Part shown: positions 3,001 to 16,763 of the stretch, in pieces
Position numbering within the stretch: position 1 is the stretch's first letter
How the letters are laid out: each line of letters opens with the position of its first letter
Origin: Klebsormidium nitens
Lineage: Eukaryota; Plantae; Klebsormidiophyceae
DNA length: 64,000 nucleotides
Reading direction: 5' to 3'
Assembly: GCA_000708835.1 (NCBI GenBank)
Contig: DF237067.1
Coordinates: 62,001-126,000, forward strand
Made by a program: the position numbers and the translations under genes
The notes under the pieces: model-generated
The model's database searches: none
Seen by the model: only the letters and a program-made list of their open reading frames with translations
What the model was told of the DNA's origin: nothing

Positions 3001-6000
3001 CCTGCGAACATCGTCTTAATGGACTCCAATAGCATGCCAGGTGCCCTGGCGTCAAACAAAAAGGAGAACGTAGACAGGGGCGAGGCGAGGGGGTCCGATG
3101 CGAGCTTGGGCGTAGCTGCTGTATCGTTCGTTGATAAGCGGCGCTCGGAACGAGGTGCGTATTAAGTAGGTAGTCAAAACATAGTCGCCGCCACCGAACC
3201 TCAATGGAGACAGATGAAGAAGTTTCCTTCCGCAAACATCTGTGCGAGGAACATAAGGGCCTGCCTGATGGTACCCGCGATGCTGATCGCGCGTGCCGTA
3301 TATTCAGAACGACGCACCTTCTCTGGCAGCTTCTCGAGGTCAGTCTCGTGCTCCTTGAAGCGGCGCACGATGTCCTGCAGCGTGGCCGACACCATGAAGT
3401 GCTGCTGCTTCAGCCGCAGCTCCTTGCCCTGCACGCCACGCCCACGAAGCCCACGTCAGCGGGCAATACAACAGTCGCCGGGTGAGAACGACAGAACACG
3501 GACACACCAAGAACGACTTTGGGAACGGGAGACTCTCACGTCGAGACGAGCTCATTCGACGGCGTTATTTAATCAGAAAGAGACCGAAAATAGTTTGTCG
3601 CCAAGAAGCACAAGTCGGACTCAAAAGCTCCTTCTTCCGATGTATTTGTGCGTCGACGAAGTCGAATTGAATCTCCCTCCTCCCAAAGGGTCCTTTTTGA
3701 GTCCCAAGCACAAACCCAAGAATCACCAGCATGGACCACAGTAGAGCGCCTAGTCCGAGCAGAGGATCTCCGAGCCCCGCAGCAACCTCAAGGCCGTAGT
3801 AAAAAAGACAGAGCCCGGGGGTAGTAGTTGCGGAGCGTCACCTGGTAGGTCCTGTCGTCGGGGTAGAGCACGCTGGAGATGGTCTCCGCCCGCTGCTTGG
3901 CCAGAATGGCCGCCACGTAGTCGCCCGTGTTGAACGACTGCAGGTCAAACTCGGCGCTGGGCTTGCCCGCCCACAGCCGCAGGTTGATCGTGTTGCCCGT
4001 GCCGTACCCGGGGATTGGGTTGTCGTACGCCACAGCCTCCACCTACGCAGCGAGCGCGGCCGTCAAGTTACGGGACGAGCGAAGGCACGAAATCGTACAG
4101 CTCGAACGGGGTGTGGGCGCAGCTTGACGACACTCATTGATCAGGCACGGTGATGCTTGAGTAGCTGCATACGACCGGGCGCATTCTGGAGACCTGGCCC
4201 GTGAAGTTGCCAGCTAAATTTTCACCAGCGCTCAAGATTCGACATCCGTTGTGTGATGACATTTTGAGAAAACTTGTCCTTTTGCCACCTCTTCACTCCA
4301 ACCCAGAGGCGTCATGCTTTCCCATCGCGATCCTACGGAGGTCTTGCAGCTGTAGGCTCAGACGCCTAGTGACGGAACAACACATTACAAAAATGTGTGG
4401 ACTCATGCAAGGACGGGTCGGCGCTCACCCTTTCGCCTGGCACCCATGTGAAGCGGCCACGGCCCTGGCTGTCAGTGTACTGCTCCACGTGGCCATAAAA
4501 CTGCACCAACGACCAGGCAAATCATGTCCCGCACGTATTCCGCCATTGACAATCAGTGCCTTCGCTCTGCTTCCGCAGGGTCAAAGAGACGCCGAAGACG
4601 GCCCACGACAAATATAAACGAAGCAAGCATACCCTTAAAAGAAGAGCCCAGTGCTGGCTGTCCAAGCGGGTCTCCTCCGCTCCCCTCCCACAGCTGACTT
4701 CTTCAGCCCTTTCGAATTCTCTCAGAAGCAGTGTAATGTTGGTTTTTTGAAGCCAAGTGTCTCTTGAGACCAGCCATACTGGCAGGCGTTCCTGATGCAG
4801 GCAATGTAAGTCTGGAACAGTTATCGGACTCTCACTGCTTGCGAACTTACCTTGATGTCATACTTGGTGGATACGCGCTCGATCTCCCATGGGTTGCTGA
4901 AGTTGAGCCAGTAGTCAGGCTGCTCGTGCTGGAAGCCGTTCTCTAGAGTTTGTCTGAACATGCACAGAATCGAAGTCCACGGATATACTTGATCGATTTG
5001 AACGGCATGCTAGGTCACTTATGCAGATTGCTCAACAGAAAGCAACCTGTTTGGTGACTCGTGCTTTTGGTCTTGAGTTAAATGACGCCGAATCGTAGAC
5101 AGCACTTGCGCCAAGGTGGTGATCGAACTGATGGCGAATCGAAGTCGCAAGCACTTGATGTAACAAGCCACTTTGCAACTTGTGCACGGAGAATTTCGAA
5201 AATGAACTGCAAAATTACTCAACTAAACCTTCGACGAATAAAAACTCACCTAAACATTCCGTATTGGTACCGCATGCCATACCTGCACCACACCGCAGGA
5301 TCCGGTCAGACGCTCCACTTTGCCACCTTCTCAACCAAGCACAAGCAGCGACTCCATGCGATTCGCAGAATCCTGAGAAAAGCAAGATCTGTAATGTGGG
5401 CGCACGCGACTCCTTTCTCCATCTTGTGTTGTGCCATGACCTTTGCGAGTGTGCATCCACACTGCGACAGTGCCAACACAATGACCCTGTCAAGAGCGCT
5501 CCACAGTCCAGGCGCGAGTTCCTCACCCCCAGGCGGGGTAGTTCAGGGTGGCCATGGAGTCGAGGAAGCAGGCCGCCAGCCGACCAAGGCCCCCGTTGCC
5601 CAACGCTGCATCGCGCTCCTGAAGACAGTGCGGCAGGAAGGGGTGACTTGAGTACTTCATCGCCTTCACCTGTCTTGCCCTGTTCATAACCCCTCATTGG
5701 GCATCCTGTGACCGGTACAGCTCGTTGCGTCAAACCTGCCATCGGATTTAAAATGCTCCGAGCACGATTCCTGAGCTCGGACCGTCCGATCTGTGACGAG
5801 GGATCCATCGAACGGCTGAAGATCAGGAACCATGCTCAGAGAGACTCGATGGCAGGTTTGAGGCAAACAGCTGTAGCACCTCGACGGTCAGATAGCCCGT
5901 GTGCCAGTACTCCGAGTCGCTAAACGCTATACCATGCGATCTGGAATCTCGGTGACACAAGGACAAAATTCTGCAAAAGGGCGGCCACGGGACCGCAGGG

Positions 6001-8274
6001 TTTAGACAACGTTTCAAGAGCAGGTCGGGCCATGCTTTCAAGATATGGAGAAGGCAACGACCTCATAAACACTCATGTTGCCGGCCCCCTGCACAAATGA
6101 GTGGTGTACGGCCACCCACCTCTTCCTTGAGGGTCTCCAGGTCGTACCCAAGCTGCCTGAGCGCCTCCCCGTACAGGTTCTTAACATCCAGGTTGTACAG
6201 GCTGTTGAGCAGGGACCGCCCTGAACCACACGACCATACTCACGTCAATGCCCACTTATGTTACTTCGGATCACACCACGGAACAAAAATCGCTACGATG
6301 GCGGTGAAGCAGCCCACTGTGCATTCAATGTAGCCCCGTTGAGCCAGGGCGCTTTGACTGCTACTAAATATCGGAGTTCCAAGCTGATGGAGACCAACTG
6401 CAGGACAGCCCTACTGGGTAGGGTGCTTGAGAAGCAACATTGACTGGCCCTCCCAGTTTTCAAAGTGCCCTCTTTGTCCGGCGTTCGAGAAACACACGGC
6501 TGGGCTGGGCTAACGCAAGTATCCCTGAACTGAACATACCCTGTACCCAATTGAAGATGATCGCAGCGAATTGGCTATAACAGAATTCGCTGAGTTCTCT
6601 GTTGGGCGGCGTCTCACCCATAAGGAACTCCATGCTGAGGTAGTAGACACGCTTGGGGTTGACCTTCTGGAAGTGCTGCTCCGTATCGTTCCAGCTCTCG
6701 ATCAGCCGGTCGCGAACGCTGTGGGCCACCGCCTGCACGGAACAGAAGAAACAGCCGCTGGCAAACCAAGACACAGAGAGCACAAGACGATTTCTTTACC
6801 TGATTTTCAGTGGGACGATGAGAGTTCGTTGATGTCCTGGAGTGCTTGCAATTGGCTGTGGACTACATGTGGGGAAATCAATGCCAGCTGTCGCGCTCTG
6901 CCCAGCTGGCGATCGGCCGTGTACTGTGGCGCCAGATTCATTTGGGCAGCCGAGCCCCGATTGATCGGTGCGCTCACGTGGTAGGCCTCGAACGACTCGA
7001 ACTTGTAGCGCGAGCGCCCGATTGTGTACTCCACATGGTTGATGATGCTCTCCTGCACTGCCACCACGTCGTTCCGCAGGTACAGGTCCTTGAGGCGGTG
7101 GATCAGCTCCATGCGTGCCGCCTCGTCCTTGTCCTCCCCGCCCAGCTCCACCCCCACCGGCCGTATCGCCTTGTCCTGGAACACCGCCGTCGGCAGGCCC
7201 AGCAGGCGCTGCTTGGCCACCGCAATCTCGGCGTTGCTCAGCTTCTTGCCCGAGGCAGTCACCACGTAGAAGGTGTCTGCCACCAGCTTGTTGCCCACAG
7301 TGTTCACCTCGGCCTTCTGCACTTGGAGGTTCAGGTCCCTGCACACAACGGTGGGGACGGGCATGAGTGGCAGCAATCAATGCAAACGTCAGCATTGCTG
7401 GGCTTGTTAATGGTTGATGCAGCAGCTTAATGGTACAAATCTGGCAGTCACTTGCTCACAGCCGTGTCGATGATTTCGGTGCAGAAGCAGGTGCATCAGT
7501 CGCAATGTCTGCTTATTACATCCAGTGCTTGCAACCTGATTTGATCACCAGATGGATGCAAGTGCTAATTGGAACTCTGAGTTGAATGAGACCAGGACTA
7601 AACGCACACAATTCGATACAGAAACATAGTGCATTGCAGTCACCTCGACCATATACAAATGCGTTCGAGTAACATCTATATCTGGTTGCAGCATTGCATC
7701 TACGATGTTGATCACCTTTGAGTTTCCAATTGAAGCATTCGATGGATCCTGGACTTGAATCAATGCCGGAGTGTCTGCATTTGTCCAATTGCTGGAAAAA
7801 CCTGCCAACATTGAAAAGAATCCTCTGAGATTCTTCAGGATTTTATTGAAAAACTCCATGCCTCACTGACCGCAAAGTGCTTGTGATCTTGGTGAGCAGT
7901 CCCGGCTGGTTCTCTGCCTCAATCTTGATTGCCGTCCAGTTCTCCTTGTCCCGATTGCTGATACTCACTTTGAGGCTGCTTTCTGACTCAACATTGGCGG
8001 GAGCGGCAATTGCCTGAGCGCGACCACCTCGCTGCGCCTGACATTGCACTGAAGCAAGTCTGGCTGGAGGGTGTCTGCTCTGAGTCCTCAACGTATCTGC
8101 ATTTGCGACTTGAGCGCTCGCGATGGAAGCTGCAGATGATGGCAGCTTGTGAGAGAATGCTGCCGGTGAAGCAATTCTCATTCCCTGCATTTGCTTCCCC
8201 TCTTCTGCGCAGGTGGCTCTTAATGAACATCCGGCTGGCGCCGTTGCCCGCGCAAAGTGCACGGAGGAGGCCAT
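1..8274 (-). CDS. Alpha-glucan (starch) phosphorylase with N-terminal transit peptide and ACT domain; multi-exon, 3' end lies outside the window
   Basis: Minus-strand exon translations give GT35 phosphorylase motifs in correct order: [161 protein letters not shown]. Exons at 7843-8274 and 6807-7376 encode an ACT-like segment ([21 protein letters not shown]...VADTFYV). The last visible exon ends at 114 at a GT donor. Confidence 0.95.
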
Positions 8275-9031
8275 AGTGGTCGGGTGATGAGGACCCCTCT
8301 AGCCACCCAATGCAAGGCACCCTGGGGAGAGTGGCACCTCTGCTCAAAGGGGAAAACTAAAACTTCTGATCGGAGCGTGTAGCACAGTATAGGAGCGCCA
8401 GCAGACACCCAATGCCACAATGCGGCTCCACAGCCTCAGGGGCTGGCAATTTGAAGATCTCAACGCCAGCCGCCTGCTGAACGAAGTGGGCTCCGCACCC
8501 TCCCGATTTGGCAAATACCCAGTGCACTTTTTGATGCAGCTCTTTTCAAGGTTCACTTTTCTCGATCCCGCTGCGGCTCGGCTGGTCGGTAGACACAGCT
8601 CCAAAAAGCGTGTTGCCTTCGTGTCTAAAATCTTCTCTGTAGCGCCATAGCCAGAGGCGACTGAAGATTACCTGATTGTAGTTCGACAAGAAGGGCCCAA
8701 AATATCCCAAGATTGTCGAGAAATATCCCAGCGGCCTCCAACCGGTCACAGTGAACACTGATACGACCTTTGAGTTCCAACTTTCATTTTCCGGCACTGG
8801 TGACTGGAGAGGAAAGTGGCCGCTGGTACGTACCTGTTTTAGGCAGTATGCACCAGGGGTCCAGGGAGTACGAATTCTAGGCCGTCGATCACCATTGTGG
8901 ATTTGATCGAACGCCTCGACTTGCTCACACAAACCAGTGCTACTAAGCACGTCACATGCATACGTCATGTGCTTTTGCAGATTCTGTCAGAACTCGACAG
9001 GCCGGCCGCGCCGGTGCGGACTGAGTCCGGA

Positions 9032-9168
9032 GCCTAAAAACTGCGGAATGCAAATGCATCCAATCAAAAACGTAATGTCTGATTCTCTAACGCCAGCGCA
9101 CCCTCCGATATAGGTGTTTGGAGGGGCGCCAACGGCCAAGATCTCCTGTTATGGGCCCGAGCTCGCCG
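9032..9168. repeat. Split direct repeat B, terminal copy (137 bp)
   Basis: GCCTAAAAACTGCGG...GAGCTCGCCG is identical base for base to 10093-10229. Confidence 0.97.
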
Positions 9169-9299
9169 GGATGCGGCTACGGGGCACCGGTGGAGTTCGT
9201 ATGGGGCCGTTGGCACCGCGAATGTCCCGGGGTTGCGGGTCAACGCGGTCTGAGGGTCGCTGGCGGTTAATGTCCGGTCAACGCGCGCATTAAATGCGA

Positions 9300-9530
9300 T
9301 CGGCGACCGCGGGGACCAGTGACCACTGAGTCAGTGCATTAGATCAGTGATCAGTGGACTGCCGCACTGCGTTACTGCAGGGAGCAGTGTTAGTAGGGTC
9401 GGGGTTAGTAGCGTAGCGCATTATGCGCGGGACTAGTAGTGCAGTGCAGTACTACCCTGCAGTAGTGTACTGCAGTAGTGTGGTCAGTGTGGCAAGGTCA
9501 CTGACTACTGCAGTACTGGCCCTGGGGTGC
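9300..9530. repeat. CAGT/ACTG-rich low-complexity tract inside the retrotransposon
   Basis: Dense CAGTG, ACTGCAGT and AGTAGTG motifs, e.g. GTAGTGCAGTGCAGTACTACCCTGCAGTAGTGTACTGCAGTAGTG. No fixed unit length. Confidence 0.7.
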
Positions 9531-9598
9531 AGGGAATGACTTTGCGACCTGGGAGAGGAGGGCGGGGTGAATTCAAACTGTAGATTGCGGTTGTTGAA

Positions 9599-11424
9599 AT
9601 GGCGCTGCGAGCGTTAGGGGTTCCTGGGAAAGGGGATGCAAGACTTGCTATTGTGGGCGGGGCTGGGATTTCAAGTGGGGCATTGGAAGTGAACGCCGAA
9701 AGCAGGTAAGGAAAGCTTCGGATCTTTGATAGGTGCAGTGGGCGGGTGGGTCGAAAATTTCATTTTCTCGTCCCTTGAGGGCGCCTCGCCAGGCGCCTTC
9801 TCCTGCTTCTTGAACAAAACACACCTTGAATTGAGAGTCTAACGCCAAGAGTTGTATGACGACTTCTAAGCTAGTTGACGCTTCAGCGCCAGGGTTTTAG
9901 AGGTTTAACAGCCGTCGGCCGAGCGGCCGGCAGATTGCGCACGCGCGCGCCCAGTTTTCCCCCGGTCGGTCGAGGACGGCGGCTAGCACAGCTTATGCCA
10001 CACAAGAGCATTCCCGGTCCCCAAATCACTCTAGGACCTGAAATCATCTCGACCGTCGCAGGTCCTATCGTGGGGGAGGCAAGCATTCCGCTGCCTAAAA
10101 ACTGCGGAATGCAAATGCATCCAATCAAAAACGTAATGTCTGATTCTCTAACGCCAGCGCACCCTCCGATATAGGTGTTTGGAGGGGCGCCAACGGCCAA
10201 GATCTCCTGTTATGGGCCCGAGCTCGCCGCCCCAAAGAAACAATTGTTGGCCAAACAACAGTTATTGAAAAATAAGGTGCCCTTACTTGCAGGAGGGAGT
10301 TCCAGGAGCGATGCCGCGCACATGTGCTGCAGGTGCGAGGCATCGAGGGCGGGCGTGGTGGGCAGTCCGCGGGGAATGTCTGGTCCGAAGCCGAGACGGA
10401 AGCGCTGTATGCGCGTTCCCTTTCCGAGTTTGGGCGCATCGCAGAACGGAAAGTGACGCCTGCAGCCAACACTTCTCGAAAGCGAGCTGCTCGCGAGTTT
10501 GCGGAGTTCCTCGGCAAGAATCCTTACGGAGTGACAATTGAGACGGCCACTCCGGCTGACGTGGGGGCTTTTATCGTCGGAGACTGGTTGCCCAGGCATA
10601 GCGGCAACTGCCGAACAGTTCTGCCGTCGACGGGGCAGACAGTGGCTTCTGCATCAGCTGTGAAGGGTGTTGTTAAGGATTTGTCAAAGACGTACACGCT
10701 GCTCGGTTTTCCCGGGCACGAGAATCCTGCAAAGGCGGAGCCGGTGAAGTCATTTCGAGACGGGTACGAGAGGTACCTGCACGACGAAGGTGTTAAAGTG
10801 CAGAGAGCGAAAGTGTTCTCGGAAGAGAAGCTGGACGCTCTCCTGCGTTTTTTGTCGGAGCGCCTGCAAGCAGAAACTGAAGCTCTGGAACTTTGCACGT
10901 TACTGATGGATCAGGCCGCCGTTTTGTACCTCTGGGAATCGTTGGCGCGGGGGAAGGAGTGCGGAACTCTAAGCGCCGACCAGGTCGAAGGAGGGGCGAC
11001 TCCTGCGGCCTATCCTGGCTGGAGCAAAACAGTCAGACAGGAGCCCAGTGCGCGGATCCGCCTCGCCCAGCCAGCGACGACTTCCCGGCTCACCTTCGTG
11101 GAAGCTGCGGCCCGGTTAGTGAAAGGTTTAGAGCTAATCGGGGAGCACGCAACTGACGGTTACCTGTTCCGCGCCCAGAACCGCCAGCGAACGGGCTTTT
11201 CTCCCGGGCCGATCTCCAGCGCGTGCTTGCGGAAACGGATCCAGCGGCGTCTGCAACAAGCTGACCTGTTCGAGGGCGAAACCCTGCATAGCTTTAGGAG
11301 GTCTGCGGTTCAGCATGCCGCCGTCAATTTGAATTACAACGTAAAGCAGTTGATGGAATTAGGACGGTGGAAAAGTTACTCTGCCTTTAAAGTATACGTG
11401 GAAGAGGTTTGGCAGCGACGCTGA
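9599..11424 (+). CDS. Tyrosine recombinase of the retrotransposon; predicted 2 exons (9599-9705, 10293-11424), 412 aa
   Basis: The ORF 10324-11424 carries the YR catalytic residues: R (ESLARGKE), HxxR (TLHSFRR), W (LGRW) and Y (AFKVY). It has an in-frame TAA at 10273 and no ATG until about 10907. The upstream exon MALRALGVPG...NAES ends at AG|GTAAGG (9706) and joins in phase to TTACTTGCAG|G (10292). The YR identity is firm; the splice is inferred. Confidence 0.85.
9768..10095. repeat. Split direct repeat A, internal copy (328 bp), abutting the internal B copy
   Basis: 9768-10043 is identical to 16457-16732. Then comes a 21-nt extra segment (10044-10064), then 31 nt matching 16733-16763 with one mismatch. 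Confidence 0.97.
10093..10229. repeat. Split direct repeat B, internal copy (137 bp)
   Basis: Identical to 9032-9168; overlaps repeat A by the GCC trinucleotide. Confidence 0.97.
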
Positions 11425-11498
11425 ACAGAATTGTTTATATATCAATGTCATGATCCAAGTCCTGCACACTTGAACCTCATGCCTGCGCTATCAAATGT

Positions 11499-12392
11499 CT
11501 ACCACCTAATGCCGAATGCTCTCAGCTTGTACATCGCTGGGTTTACAGTTCCTTGTGGAACTCTGAAGCTGGGTGTACAAATACTCGCGCTGCGCGGCAG
11601 CTCCAGCGGCCCCGTCATGCAGGCCTCCGTGCCAATGTTTTGGAGCGCCATCCACCAATTGGTGGCCGGCGCTTCAGGCACGATGATGACGCAGTCCGTT
11701 CGGTACCGCCGCACCGCTTGGATGACGTCACTTAGCAAGCGCACAGGGGGGAAGACCCATGCCACGTCCCCCGGCGCCAGCAGCTCGCTCCAGTCGGTCC
11801 GCATAGCGTCTGCTGCCTGGGCCCCCGGGGCCAGGTGCAGGCTCACGAATCGCTCCGTGACATGCCACGTTTCGGACCCGAATAGGTCGATCGCCGGCTC
11901 CACCCCGAAGTGGCTCAGGACCCTGCGCACTTCCGAATCCCCGAGTCCCCAATCTGAGCTGTCCTGGTGCTTGCTCAGATCGTCTTCTTCCTGCATCTCC
12001 GCCCGCGGCCGCCACTGCGCGATGATGTCAAAGTCTGCCTCCACGCACAGCTCGAAGAGCTGCCTCACCGCCTCGTTCACGTCCGGCGCCCTGCTGTTCA
12101 TGGCGTTGACAGCCCGCACAGCACCCTGGTTGTCTCCCAGAAGGAGGACCGCCGCACCTTGGAGCGCGTCCCCCGCTCGCGCGCGCGCCTCTGTCAGCAC
12201 TCGGAGGAACGCGACCATCTCGCGCGCCGTGCTGGACATGCGCTTCTCCTCGTCGGAGAGCGCCCCGGCTACTGTCAGCTTCTCCTTTCCTGGGATCTTA
12301 ATTGTACCCCCGAACCCCGACTCCAATGCGTCTGAGCCTGCTTCAACCGCAATGCTGCGCGGGTACCACCGCTGCGCGGGTACCCGTTCCAC
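11499..12392 (-). CDS. RNase H plus DIRS-type adenine-methyltransferase-like domain (C-terminal Pol), frameshifted from RT
   Basis: RNase H acidic residues in GSDALESGFGG, STAREMVA, LLGDNQGAV and EEDDLSK. These are followed by DLFGS...DAMRTDW...AWVFPP...VIIVPEAP..NWW, which matches the MT domain known from DIRS elements. Confidence 0.88.
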   Translation of the reverse strand: MERVPAQRWYPRSIAVEAGSDALESGFGGTIKIPGKEKLTVAGALSDEEKRMSSTAREMVAFLRVLTEARARAGDALQGAAVLLLGDNQGAVRAVNAMNSRAPDVNEAVRQLFELCVEADFDIIAQWRPRAEMQEEDDLSKHQDSSDWGLGDSEVRRVLSHFGVEPAIDLFGSETWHVTERFVSLHLAPGAQAADAMRTDWSELLAPGDVAWVFPPVRLLSDVIQAVRRYRTDCVIIVPEAPATNWWMALQNIGTEACMTGPLELPRSASICTPSFRVPQGTVNPAMYKLRAFGIRW

Positions 12393-14084
12393 TCGTCGAG
12401 GCGCTGCAAGAAGGTCCTTGCCGCTTGCCGCGCGGATTCCGGCGTCTCGAAGACGTCATCCCAGGTGAGCTTACCCTGGATGGCGGCAAAGAACGGGCGG
12501 CTGTACAACGCCGCCGGGAGGACCGCCGGGCTAACCGATATCACCTTACCGGCCACTCTTGCCAGCAACCGGGGGGTTACCTCTGCGCACTCTGCGAGCT
12601 CGCGCAGCGCAGTGCGCAGCTTCTCCATCTTGGCGGGGGAGACCGCGAACCTTTGCCGAATTGTGTCGATGACGAAGCCGAGCCACGGCCCCTCCTGCTG
12701 GGGCCACAAGTTGCACTTGGGCAGGCTGAACACGGCGCCGAGCAGGGTGAGGGTTTTCACCACGAGGACCGTCGACCAAGCACACCTCCAAAAGTCCAGG
12801 GTCCCCGTTAGTCCGTCGTCGAGGTAGCTTGAGATTGGGATGCTCCTCAGTCGCAGCTCCTTGGCTGCTTCCTGCGTCAGCAGGGTGTAGACGAAGCAGG
12901 CTTCCGACCAGCCAAAGCACATGCCGTTGTAGTGCATGTACACATGGCCAACCTTGATGCCGAAGTACTTGCGGTAGGCTGGGTGGATGAGGAGGTGGTA
13001 GTATCCAGCCTTGAAGTCCCAGGTTGTGAAGAAGCCCCGCTCTGTGAGAAAGGTCAGCACCTCTCTCAGAGTCTCGTACTTGAACGCCTGGCGTTTGGAG
13101 AAGAGGTTGACGTACCGGGCGTTCACCACCAGCCGCCCCTTCGGCAGGTTTACCACCCCCAGCGGGTTAACCACCTTCGGTTTGCCGTCACTGGGGCCGT
13201 AAACTTCGAGCGTCCTGTTGACCACCATTTTAACCACCTCCCCAACGGCGAACTCGCTATTATCGTAGAACGACCGGTGGTTGTCGAACTCCACTGGGTG
13301 GGGGACCTGACCCGTCAGCATCGCGTCCACTTCTGCCGCCCCTACTGTTCGGGCGAGCATCGATTGGACCTGCTCCCGCTTCTTCGTGTCCGCCTCGTCC
13401 GTTCCCACGAATTGCGGCCGGACGCCGCTCCTGAGCATTTTGAGGACCCGTTTCGACGATTCCCGCTTGGAATCTTTAAGCATCTCTTCCCAAGCTGGGA
13501 GGTGCCTTTCAAAACTGCCGGCGACAAACTGGTCCGGGTCGTACGCGTGCGCCCCGACGTTCTTGAGCCAGTCTTCGATCTCCGCTTTCTGTTCCTGCGT
13601 CATCTCCTCGCCCGTTTTGGGGCCTGGCGCCAAGTCCAGAGTCTCACGCATGGCTTTGCGGAGCTGCTCCTTGTCGGGGGTGGCCGCACTCCTTACTTTA
13701 AGACCCATGAAGAACTGGTGGGAGCAATTCTGCAGTACCGTTGCGCTCCCTCTCACGAGAGGGTCCGACACCAAGTCGGGTTCACTCTCGTCCTGCTCCA
13801 TCTCCGGGGCGATCGATTCTGGACTCGGCGGTTGCGCGGGCGGCTTTGGCAGACTGGTGCCTTCCTTGTGCGCTGGGGTTTGCGGCTTATCGTCGGGCTC
13901 CGCTGGGCACGGCGCATTTCCGCCGGGGCTTGTCGTGAGAAGGGCCTCGCCCTGCCGTCCCGAGACTGTTTCGCACCGAATCCGCGGGCTAACCCGTTCG
14001 GGTGCACCCGTTCCGCCCGCCTTTTGCGGAGGTTCCGGCCGTGTGCCGGCCGTTTCGTTGGCCTTCTGGTCCGGCGAGGTTCCC
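12275..14084 (-). CDS. DIRS-type reverse transcriptase (ATG at 13801; frame open upstream to a predicted splice acceptor at 14084)
   Basis: RT motifs GRLVVNARYVN, WDFKAGYYHL, YNGMCFGW, SYLDDGL and WLGFVIDT. I translated 14084-13801 by hand: no stop codon, Pro/Ala-rich linker. Confidence 0.93.
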
Positions 14085-14852
14085 CTGGCGAGGTTCAGAA
14101 AGGTCAGCTTAGGTTGAGCCGCAGCGGCGGTCTCAGAAACGAAGAAAAACGCTGCGGAGAATCTTTTCCGCCCAGGAATAATCTCAGTTTCACTAACCCA
14201 TATTTGGGGAATTTGACCCCTAAATATACGGGGCCTGCGCGGGGCCGCTTCACACCTGTCGCAGGTTGGGGCATCTTATCGAGGTGAAAAAATCGTTCTG
14301 GCGCCCCGGGTTAGTAATCTGCGTCGCTTAACGAGAAGTTAACCAGTGGGTTAAGCGAGTTTGGCGAGCGTATTTACACCGCGTTTCGCGGTTCCGCTCC
14401 GCGGTAGAACGTCTGCTCCGCGCGCGCGTCGATCAAAAGGAGAGTTCATAGCTGCATCCTTACTAGTTGGGTGCAACATAAAGATCAGTATCCACGTTCA
14501 TGTCATACAAAGTCCATCCGAATGCAGACGCAAGCCGGGCCTCGCTCCGCCTTGCAGGAAGGTGAGCTTCTTACTGAGTGCATTCATTTGCACGTGCCGG
14601 CGCCATAAGGATGAAAGAGGGGCCGATTGAAGAGCCCTTCATTGGGCCTGTGAGACTGACGGACTGCCATGAGACATAACGTCAATGGCGTTCGACAAGA
14701 AAACAGGGGAGAACCATACTAATCAGAATATCAGCCTTTCCACTCGACTTGTTCCGGTCCGTCTACAGTCTTCCTGCCTTTCGTCTCACGTTCGATCCTA
14801 GGATGTTCTGACTATTTTCTTCTTGTGTCTCTACGTCTTCTTGTAGGTCTTC

Positions 14853-16377
14853 TTACCTACGGCCTGATCTATTTGCCGGAGCGCGATTGTCGCGATCTCC
14901 TCTATCATCGCGCTCGCGATCCTCAGGGCCTCGCTTGCCCCCCCAACCGGAGCCTTTGCCGGCGCCGCCGGGTCCGTTCCTGTTAATCGGAGAAGAACGG
15001 ATCAGCGAATCAGGCCGCTTCGGGGCCGCTTATCTGGTGTCAAAGTGAGGCATTTTTTGCCTGGCCACTGTCAGCCCTCTCCGGTCCACGTTCGTGCGGA
15101 GATTGGCCTTAAGGCCACCCATTGCGGGCTTTGGTCCGTTCGGACGTCACGCCCTTTTATGGGCCGCTTAATTTTCAACTCAGACAATCTATTGCCCTGC
15201 TAAACGTCTAACCGACAGCATCAGCACTTCCGCCATTCGCTCTGGCAGGGGCATGACGGCCAACTTACTTGCCTTATCCGTTCCTTCTCGCACTTCACAA
15301 TTAGATCGAGTTTGCGCAGCATCGAAGTGGCATCCGACCAACCCGCTCGCACTCGACAGGCTTCCTCCAGGCCCTTTCTTATGCCAGCACATTTCGAAAT
15401 CTTCTCAAAGGCTGGGTCGTCGGACATTCTCACCTTCCAAAGTTGTTTCCGCCACCTCCTGCGCCGCGCACGACATTAGGGCGTGCGTGTCCTTCTCCCA
15501 CTTGCTCTGCCGCTTCTTTGCGGTACTCCTCGTAAGTCTTTTTGATCTTCTTCTCCAGGTCGCGCACAGTCTCCGCCGACCACGCACTGCTGTCCCCGGC
15601 TTCTTCTAGTGCCAACTTCATGTCTGACACGAATCCGTCCGCTAGGTATTCCAGGTCGAGCGAAACGAAGTTGATCTGATTCGCGTAGAAGTAAACTGCT
15701 GCCATTAGATGGGCCACCTTTGGGTCAGGTTCCTTATAGATCTCAAACAGCTGCTCAAGCTTGGTGTGCCACGCAGGCGAATCGCGTGGGATTTTCCTGA
15801 GTGCCGCCTCCATGTGGGAGATCAGGGAGCCCTTTTGCACAAATTCTTTAAAGGCTCTCTCTAAGCGGGCTGCTCCCCCTGCCAAGTCAGCTTCTCGCAT
15901 GAACCCAGGGGTTAGCGCGTTGATCACTGCAGCTCCCGGCGTAACAGCAGGAGGGTCAGGGATTCTGACCCTTCTTGCTGGCTGCTGTTCTGGAATCTGC
16001 TGCCCCTGAGGCGGCTGCTGAGCCTGGTCTGCATGCCCCATCTGACCCAAGGGCGCCCCGGGCGGAGCCCCCGGGATGGCCACCTCAAAAATATCATGCC
16101 TCAGCCCAAATTCACTGAGCCTGGTAAGCAGCGTGTCCTGGGGGTACCTGGTACCTATGCCAATACTGAGCTCCGACTTGTCAACCAGTCTGTGCAAAAG
16201 CTCACCCCTTGCGTCTTCTAGCCAGAACTTCCCCGAGGCGTGATCCACATCTATTACCCTAGCCCAGAGCTTTCTCCCCGAGCCGGGCAATTCATGCAGC
16301 AAGTACTCTCCGATCAACCCTTGCGGTCCTGCTAAGTGTATGAGGGCAGCCAGCTGAGGCTCCATGCCCTGCGCCAT
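14853..16377 (-). CDS. ORF1 (Gag-like) of the retrotransposon; predicted exons 16377-15434 and 14979-14853, 356 aa
   Basis: A 315-aa ORF at the 5' end of the element ends at GGAAG|GTGAGA. Splicing to CTGAT...TTCTTCTCCGATTAACAG|G continues in frame as NGPGGAGKGSGWGGKRGPEDRERDDRGDRDNRAPANRSGRR*. The Gag role is inferred from position. Confidence 0.7.
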
Positions 16378-16456
16378 CTCTATGCGTCTCTGGGCCGTTT
16401 CTCACTGCCTTTGTACGGGGGAGACCCCTTCAGTGTGAACACCCCCAAACGTACAA

Positions 16457-16763
16457 TCGTCCCTTGAGGGCGCCTCGCCAGGCGCCTTCTCCTGCTTCTT
16501 GAACAAAACACACCTTGAATTGAGAGTCTAACGCCAAGAGTTGTATGACGACTTCTAAGCTAGTTGACGCTTCAGCGCCAGGGTTTTAGAGGTTTAACAG
16601 CCGTCGGCCGAGCGGCCGGCAGATTGCGCACGCGCGCGCCCAGTTTTCCCCCGGTCGGTCGAGGACGGCGGCTAGCACAGCTTATGCCACACAAGAGCAT
16701 TCCCGGTCCCCAAATCACTCTAGGACCTGAAACTATCGTGGGGAAGGCAAGCATTCCGCTGCC
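16457..16763. repeat. Split direct repeat A, terminal copy (307 bp)
   Basis: Matches 9768-10095 apart from a 21-nt indel and one substitution. Confidence 0.97.

Follow-up and report, generated by a model that had tools for sequence, protein, structure and literature searches.

Kangaroo, a retrotransposon of Volvox carteri in the PAT group of DIRS elements, has split direct repeats and no DDE integrase, and its tyrosine recombinase (YR) gene is inverted relative to the reverse transcriptase (RT) gene (PMC4157794, PMC3266345). Its internal repeats lie between the methyltransferase (MT) and YR regions (PMC4157794), and introns were reported in kangaroo-1 transcripts, according to the statement in PMC1636488 that cites Duncan et al. 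2002. A "novel" PAT element of Daphnia pulex (Szitenberg et al. 2014, Fig. 1G) also has an inverted YR, with internal repeats upstream of the 3′ terminal repeat (PMC4157794). A retrotransposon of this kind lies at about 9035–16763 of a 64,000-nucleotide (nt) stretch of the alga Klebsormidium nitens (contig DF237067.1, positions 62,001 to 126,000, assembly GCA_000708835.1), which is called the window here. The main subject of this text is its YR gene. The sequence and a comparison with related elements suggest, at a probability of about 0.78, that the gene has two exons. Its AUG would come from a short exon 1 in the spacer X, the internal repeat unit A1B2 would be spliced out, and exon 2 would encode the recombinase.

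On the plus strand the element is ordered B1, X, A1 B2, YR (rightward), pol and gag (leftward), and A2. It was assigned to the PAT group of DIRS elements by its YR, its RT and its split repeats with abutting internal copies, all of which are present. The repeats are 99% identical and the YR body is intact; the element is a young PAT/kangaroo-like YR retrotransposon. With YR on the plus strand and RT on the minus strand the two genes are convergent, that is, the YR is inverted. The likeness to kangaroo extends to the inverted YR, the split direct repeats and the lack of a DDE integrase. The difference lies in the internal repeats. In the present element A1B2 is located 5′ of the YR body, on the side away from pol and between the putative exons, which departs from the strict kangaroo arrangement. 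The gross order is the same as in the Daphnia pulex element, as compared by description only, and that description includes neither an intron nor an upstream YR exon. Literature searches, which did not extend to Duncan et al. 2002, turned up no paper in which a YR intron spans the internal repeats.

Probable two-exon structure of the recombinase gene

An in-frame TAA at 10273–10275 precedes the YR frame, which stays open from 10276 up to its stop codon at 11422–11424 and has its first Met at codon 211 of 383. Exon 1 (Table 1) ends with ...GAAAGCAG|GTAAGG, which makes the donor CAG|GTAAGG with the donor G at 9706. This donor alone scores at least 7 in the spacer X of the window, and its sole ATG-open phase is that of exon 1. 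The acceptor is CTTACTTGCAG|G (TTGCAG|G) at 10292/10293. Joined in phase 2, the two exons read ...VNAESR|REFQERCRAHVLQVRG (...NAESR|REFQERC...) and form an uninterrupted frame of 412 codons. A consensus donor, a consensus acceptor and frame-compatible exons, as in a spliceosomal GT-AG intron, are all present.

An earlier note on this stretch, made from the letters alone, had stated that the YR frame lacks a usable ATG, that an exon at 9599–9705 ends at AG|GTAAGG and joins in phase 2 across a 587-nt intron, and that this intron holds the whole internal A+B block, 9768–10229. The open reading frames (ORFs), the splice motifs and the repeat coordinates agree with it at every position.

The YR body bears the motifs HSFRR...GRWKS...Y of a tyrosine recombinase, instead of those of a DDE integrase. 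A search with exon 2 returned 179 homologues, many of them named integrase. PF00589 was recognized in 14 of 14 aligned YR members, with a best E of 6.5e-10; the window's own protein gave just E 0.025, below the Pfam cut-off. A PDB sequence search with the YR profile gave no match at E 0.01 or better.

The best database match, P0001, is a public K. nitens protein of 412 aa with the title "putative Phage_integrase [Klebsormidium nitens]", and the spliced product agrees with it letter for letter. P0001 starts with MALRALGVPGKGDARLAIVGGAGISSGALEVNAESRREFQ. Its residues 1–36 are those of the exon 1 peptide, and the YR body at 10294–11421 matches it with 100% identity. The nuclear genes of K. nitens were predicted by Augustus, with assembled transcripts mapped by SPALN (PMC4052687), which makes P0001 a predicted model that does not prove splicing. 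The gene model was already public; the addition made here is its conservation across the family.

Conservation of splice signals and phase in related elements

Eleven related loci were fetched by exact-protein look-up, which with the window makes 12. Four are K. nitens scaffolds with eukaryote-style gene models from assembly GCA_000708835.1 (L001, L002, L005, L006), and seven are metagenome contigs with prokaryote-style, intron-blind ORF calls (L003, L004, L007, L008, L011, L012, L013). A short Logan contig, L009, was added for an acceptor alignment of 13 sequences. The identity of the relatives to the window in YR ranges from 82% down to 45%. A search of metagenome contigs with a 14-sequence YR alignment returned one locus, of 28% identity, which was unusable for comparison. 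The layout B1, X, (A1) B2, 45–70 nt, YR is constant in the 12 loci wherever the contig shows it. The earlier note had proposed a search for the same exon-intron layout in related elements; it is conserved in the 12 loci, five of them K. nitens (the window included) and seven metagenomic, with exceptions in individual signals that are given below.

The acceptor AG falls at the same codon in 13 of 13 sequences, directly before a conserved [E/D]FQ..C block. Nine sequences have TGCAG|G there; L011 has TTCAG|G, L012 TACAG|G, L013 TGGAG|G and L008 TGCAAG|. The T at −5 and the AG are kept in all 13 and the C at −3 in 11. The codon before AGG encodes Cys, or else Phe, Tyr or Trp, a variation that seems to fit a splice acceptor better than a conserved cysteine. 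Intron-blind ORF calls often begin with "..CR", "LFR", "RYR" or "GWR", because they translate the acceptor.

A coding explanation of these residues was also considered. That "CR" before FQ..C is the true N-terminus, descended from an ancestral "MCR" start, was partly rejected; one such "M" is a TTG call (L009). This view is also opposed by the Phe, Tyr and Trp variants, which retain the invariant T at −5 and the AG; yet the ATGs of L007 and L008 are real.

Eleven of the 12 loci have a donor scoring at least 7 (AG|GTAAGG, AG|GTGAGT and others) no more than 60 nt upstream of a conserved G-run; the background of such donors in the same loci is 2.8e-4 per nt. The sequence around the donors does not align, and the distance from donor to G-run varies from 4 to about 60 nt. 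Read upstream from the donor, the phase required by the acceptor reaches an ATG ahead of any stop in 10 of 12 loci, versus 6 of 24 cases for the other two phases (Fisher p = 0.0014). In L008 the acceptor is displaced by one base, placing exon 2 in phase 0, and the donor of L008 has its ATG in phase 0. The join ...STKEK|EKFQ has a spacing equal to that of ...AESR|REFQ, and L008 reads as a joint, compensating phase shift of donor and acceptor.

The predicted exon 1 peptides have 14 to about 40 residues. Several start with M-[E/A]-x-A-L, and most close with an acidic residue, one or two positions ahead of the Arg or Lys at the junction. The peptide is probably a poorly conserved, dispensable leader.

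Exon 1 might instead be a coincidence of gene prediction, the start-less copy being dead or served in trans and the motifs serving replication or recombination and not splicing. The poor conservation of the peptide agrees with this, as does the copy described below that carries two nonsynonymous changes and one synonymous change in exon 1; both motifs also adjoin conserved non-coding blocks that are probably cis-elements, namely the G-run and the CAATTGTTG motif, and no contig in the read sets below covers the junction. A coincidence does not readily account for an enrichment of open ATG frames that is specific to the one phase required by the acceptor, nor for the joint shift of both phases in L008. 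The donor consensus is kept at a varying distance from the G-run, which is more the behavior of a splice site than of part of a fixed binding site, and the youth of the element and its intact YR body speak against a dead copy. We consider a coincidence unlikely. The two-exon gene is preferred, as splice sites and phase of a GT-AG intron are kept in diverged homologues. The retention of donor, phase, ATG and acceptor, though the surrounding sequence has been erased, argues for selection on a real intron. An algal YR retrotransposon family appears to have kept, over deep divergence, an intron fitted around its internal repeat junction.

Observations against the two-exon gene

A number of observations weigh against this interpretation. 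The 12 loci are related, so the statistics overstate their independence, and the public gene model was built on the same kind of logic and is not independent support. L007 has only a weak donor, AAG|GTAAAT, with no ATG upstream of it. L013 has a good donor, a poor acceptor and no ATG in the needed phase 2. An ATG stands immediately before the acceptor TGCA(G/A)G in L007 and L008, and just after the acceptor in L004. In parts of the family, translation might thus begin without splicing or in some other way. Given the ATGs at or beside the acceptor in L004, L007 and L008, the family does not strictly need the upstream exon. With L013 as a further exception, it evidently tolerates more than one source of the start codon.

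Reads were checked on 8500–12500 of the window (4,001 letters) in four public runs, X1 to X4, and no contig of these runs crosses 9705/10293 there; splicing itself is inferred from the sequence. Run X1, probably RNA, gave a single 242-nt contig at 10564–10805. It is the sole probable-RNA contig on the YR body and could equally derive from RT-sense genomic RNA. Run X2 is probably DNA of another strain or sample. It contains a copy that is 99.3% identical, with its record at 10246–11260, in which the acceptor AG is changed to AA (G10292A) and the donor has no visible change. Such a substitution would move the AG over by one position, and without a matching change at the donor the frame would be disrupted. 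Six further changes fall in five codons of the YR body, three of them altering the amino acid, and this copy looks to be decaying in view of its acceptor and YR-body changes.

These exceptions bear also on a further possibility, that the acceptor at 10292/10293 is used with another or an additional 5′ exon or promoter, in B1, repeat A or host DNA, or that the mRNA starts inside A1/B2 and is translated by non-AUG initiation. Among the splice signals the acceptor is conserved best, a coding exon 1 is missing in L007, and the start codons at the acceptor in L004, L007 and L008 suggest flexible 5′ ends. The choice of donors limits this possibility: the one at 9706 is the only site in X of the window that scores at least 7 and the only strong one with an in-frame ATG, and across the 12 loci no other strong donor is conserved in position. 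We therefore hold such a 5′ end to be quite improbable, and an exon 1 located in X remains the preferred source of the AUG.

Run X2 also gave the sole joint among runs X1 to X4. It is a weak one, 9257/9738, in DNA, with a shorter side of 21 nt. Run X4, probably RNA, gave a 229-nt contig at 16355–16583, of which 127 nt are on repeat A. Its 30 printed flank letters match 16427–16456, and the contig was therefore assigned to the A2 end, where it covers the border of A2 with the gag leader. It fits an RT-sense RNA that starts inside repeat A.

Proposed expression of the recombinase and persistence of the intron

Retrotransposons normally lose introns, as their replication passes through RNA. To our knowledge, an antisense gene is the one place where a retrotransposon intron can persist. 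In the proposed scheme, the YR mRNA would start in X, and exon 1 would supply the AUG together with the poorly conserved leader peptide. The spliceosome would then remove the A1+B2 unit, which resembles a long terminal repeat, and with it six upstream AUGs and the in-frame stop. The whole recombinase would be encoded by exon 2.

The intron lies in the YR sense, and its borders on the RT-sense strand are CT..AC. The RT-sense genomic RNA would thus retain the intron and be copied intact, which bears out the claim of the earlier note that an intron of the antisense gene is not removable from this RNA. New copies would keep both the intron and the A|B junction, because the RT-sense RNA is reverse-transcribed intact. 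The note had also proposed that the element hides a cis-signal in the intron. The intron does enclose the A+B block; "hides" is a description of this arrangement and not a mechanism.

At 10095|10096 the A|B junction mirrors the ends of the element in their joined state, and it may act as the bridge template for rejoining them. In published models of DIRS and PAT replication the internal junction bridges the rejoining of the element ends. The equivalent internal complementary region (ICR) of DIRS-1 was found experimentally to be essential (PMC7192593).

Introns in antisense transcripts of the Drosophila TART elements persist through retrotransposition, and their sizes and spacing are alike between subfamilies despite diverged sequence (PMC1636488). 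Other intron-bearing retroelements are L1, Tad, Penelope and Athena (PMC1636488). The present element resembles TART in having its intron in an antisense transcript. It differs in that its antisense transcript codes for the recombinase of the element itself, and in that the internal repeat junction lies inside the intron.

The comparison with a natural retrotransposition-indicator cassette, also drawn in the note, has to be inverted. In cassettes such as mbsrI in DIRS-1, the intron runs opposite to the marker; splicing removes it from the element RNA, and new copies lack it (PMC7192593). Common to both is an antisense gene in a retrotransposon, with an intron whose fate depends on the transcribed strand. 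The cassette intron is in the sense of the element and is lost. Here the intron shares the sense of the antisense gene and stays in new copies, which is the opposite logic.

A plus-strand promoter for exon 1 that needs a complete A-B unit upstream of X is a speculative addition, which we regard as very doubtful. With it, the spliced YR mRNA would come mainly from a joined-end intermediate. A complete A-B unit upstream of X would exist only in a circular or tandem form with A2 abutting B1, which is the intermediate needing integration. The idea is analogous to the junction promoters of bacterial insertion sequence (IS) circles.

If RNA confirms the splicing, the element would offer a clear example from nature of a retroelement gene that relies on splicing by the host, and recombinase frames that seem to lack a start codon in genome scans would be explained. 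It would also warn annotators that prokaryote-style ORF calling truncates such genes or misplaces their starts; the metagenome calls begin at GTG, at TTG or at codons CR.. read from the acceptor. Several conserved non-coding blocks are also candidate cis-elements for the poorly understood replication of PAT-type elements.

Other features of the element

The coordinates of the features are collected in Table 1.

Table 1. Features of the YR retrotransposon in the window, and positions of the G-run in related loci
Feature	Position	Strand	Remarks
Retrotransposon	~9035–16763		Split-direct-repeat YR type
Terminal repeat B1	9035–9168	+	99% identical to B2; left plus-strand end, 3′ end in RT sense
Spacer X	9169–9767	+	Between B1 and A1; part upstream of exon 1 is 9169–9598
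Exon 1 of YR gene (putative)	9599–9705	+	107 nt: ATG (9599–9601), 35 codons and 2 nt; peptide MALRALGV...NAES(R)
Putative GT-AG intron	9706–10292	+	587 nt; 6 ATGs inside; encloses A1 and B2 entirely (9768–10229)
G-run motif	9738–9762	+	GTGGGCGGGTGGGTCGAAAATTT; at the border of X and repeat A
Internal repeat A1	9768–10095	+	99% identical to A2; contains a 21-nt insertion
Internal repeat B2	10096–10229	+	99% identical to B1; abuts A1
Motif between B2 and acceptor	10225–10276	+	GCCGCCCCAAA..CAATTGTTG..AAACAACAGTTATTGA.AAATAA(C); ~50 nt; includes in-frame TAA 10273
Exon 2, YR body	10293–11424	+	376 codons and stop; ...HSFRRSAVQH...GRWKSYSAFKVYVEEVWQRR*
gag and pol (RT) genes	12275–16377	−	From the ORF listing; convergent with the YR gene
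Terminal repeat A2	16457–16763	+	Right plus-strand end, 5′ end in RT sense
G-run in relatives	L001 407–425; L002 8115–8135; L005 6926–6945; L007 7630–7646; L008 7633–7650; L011 7488–7506		

Two minus-strand ORFs were scanned for the RT. RVT_1 was found on 12275–13801 with E 2.7e-06 and 27.7 bits, slightly below the 29.6-bit cut-off. Among the 11 related loci fetched with their neighbours, RVT_1 stands beside YR in nine, being weak or faint in two of these. A search of the whole window revealed no other YR copy.

The repeat analysis first gave 9768–10048 and 16457–16737 for A, and 9026–9168 and 10087–10229 for B; the limits were refined by reading the sequence. The tail of A1 up to 10095 corresponds to A2 nt 16738–16763, apart from the 21-nt insertion TCATCTCGACCGTCGCAGGTC at about 10044–10064, which is in the internal A1 and not in the terminal A2. 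The two internal copies abut at 10095|10096, and the layout is that of PAT-group DIRS elements with an inverted recombinase (PMC4157794). The host flank to the left of B1, nt 9026–9034, is TCCGGAGCC and is similar to the final 9 nt of repeat A, nt 10087–10095, TCCGCTGCC. Such likeness is what one would expect from insertion of the joined A|B junction by the recombinase at a target of similar sequence, with no target-site duplication.

The G-run, with the consensus GGGTGGGTGGGTCGAAAATTT, is the best-conserved non-coding block in the 12-locus alignment. In L007 and L008 it consists, on the YR-sense strand, of four G3 runs with 1-nt loops, the pattern of a canonical G-quadruplex. A role as an intronic splicing enhancer or as a cis-element of replication is possible.

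The block at 10225–10276 is conserved at the same place in L001 to L006 and L011 to L013 in the alignment of 13 sequences. It shows imperfect dyad symmetry; in L001 and L005 one arm has C in place of T and the other has G in place of A. RNAalifold predicted no structure for this motif. The block may serve as a branch-site region, as a site where the recombinase binds or as a signal for priming.

The part of X upstream of exon 1 is presumed to hold the YR promoter and the 5′ untranslated region. An array rich in CAGT/ACTG at about 9320–9530 contains 20 such words, versus 2.9 expected from shuffles; examples are ACTGCAGTAGTG and GGTCAGTG. The closest K. nitens relative, L002, has 21 of them at 7690–7830, versus 3.5 expected. 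The enrichment was not seen in the more distant families compared. It is possible that the array serves as a promoter or enhancer array of the YR gene.

Some of the related loci show features of their own. A CGG|GTAAGG site (GTAAGG/GTTAGG-like) is positioned exactly at the border of B1 and X in L004 (1080), L005 (6574) and L012 (4326), with no ATG-open frame; it forms a conserved motif where repeat B ends. The B1 repeat of L003 is interrupted by about 570 nt (6269–6313 and 6886–6977, versus a contiguous 7726–7860), and was probably split by an insertion into the terminal repeat. In L013 the block of donor and G-run is present twice, at 1937–2006 and 5772–5841, with 76% identity, which suggests a second, diverged element adjoining the first or nested in it.

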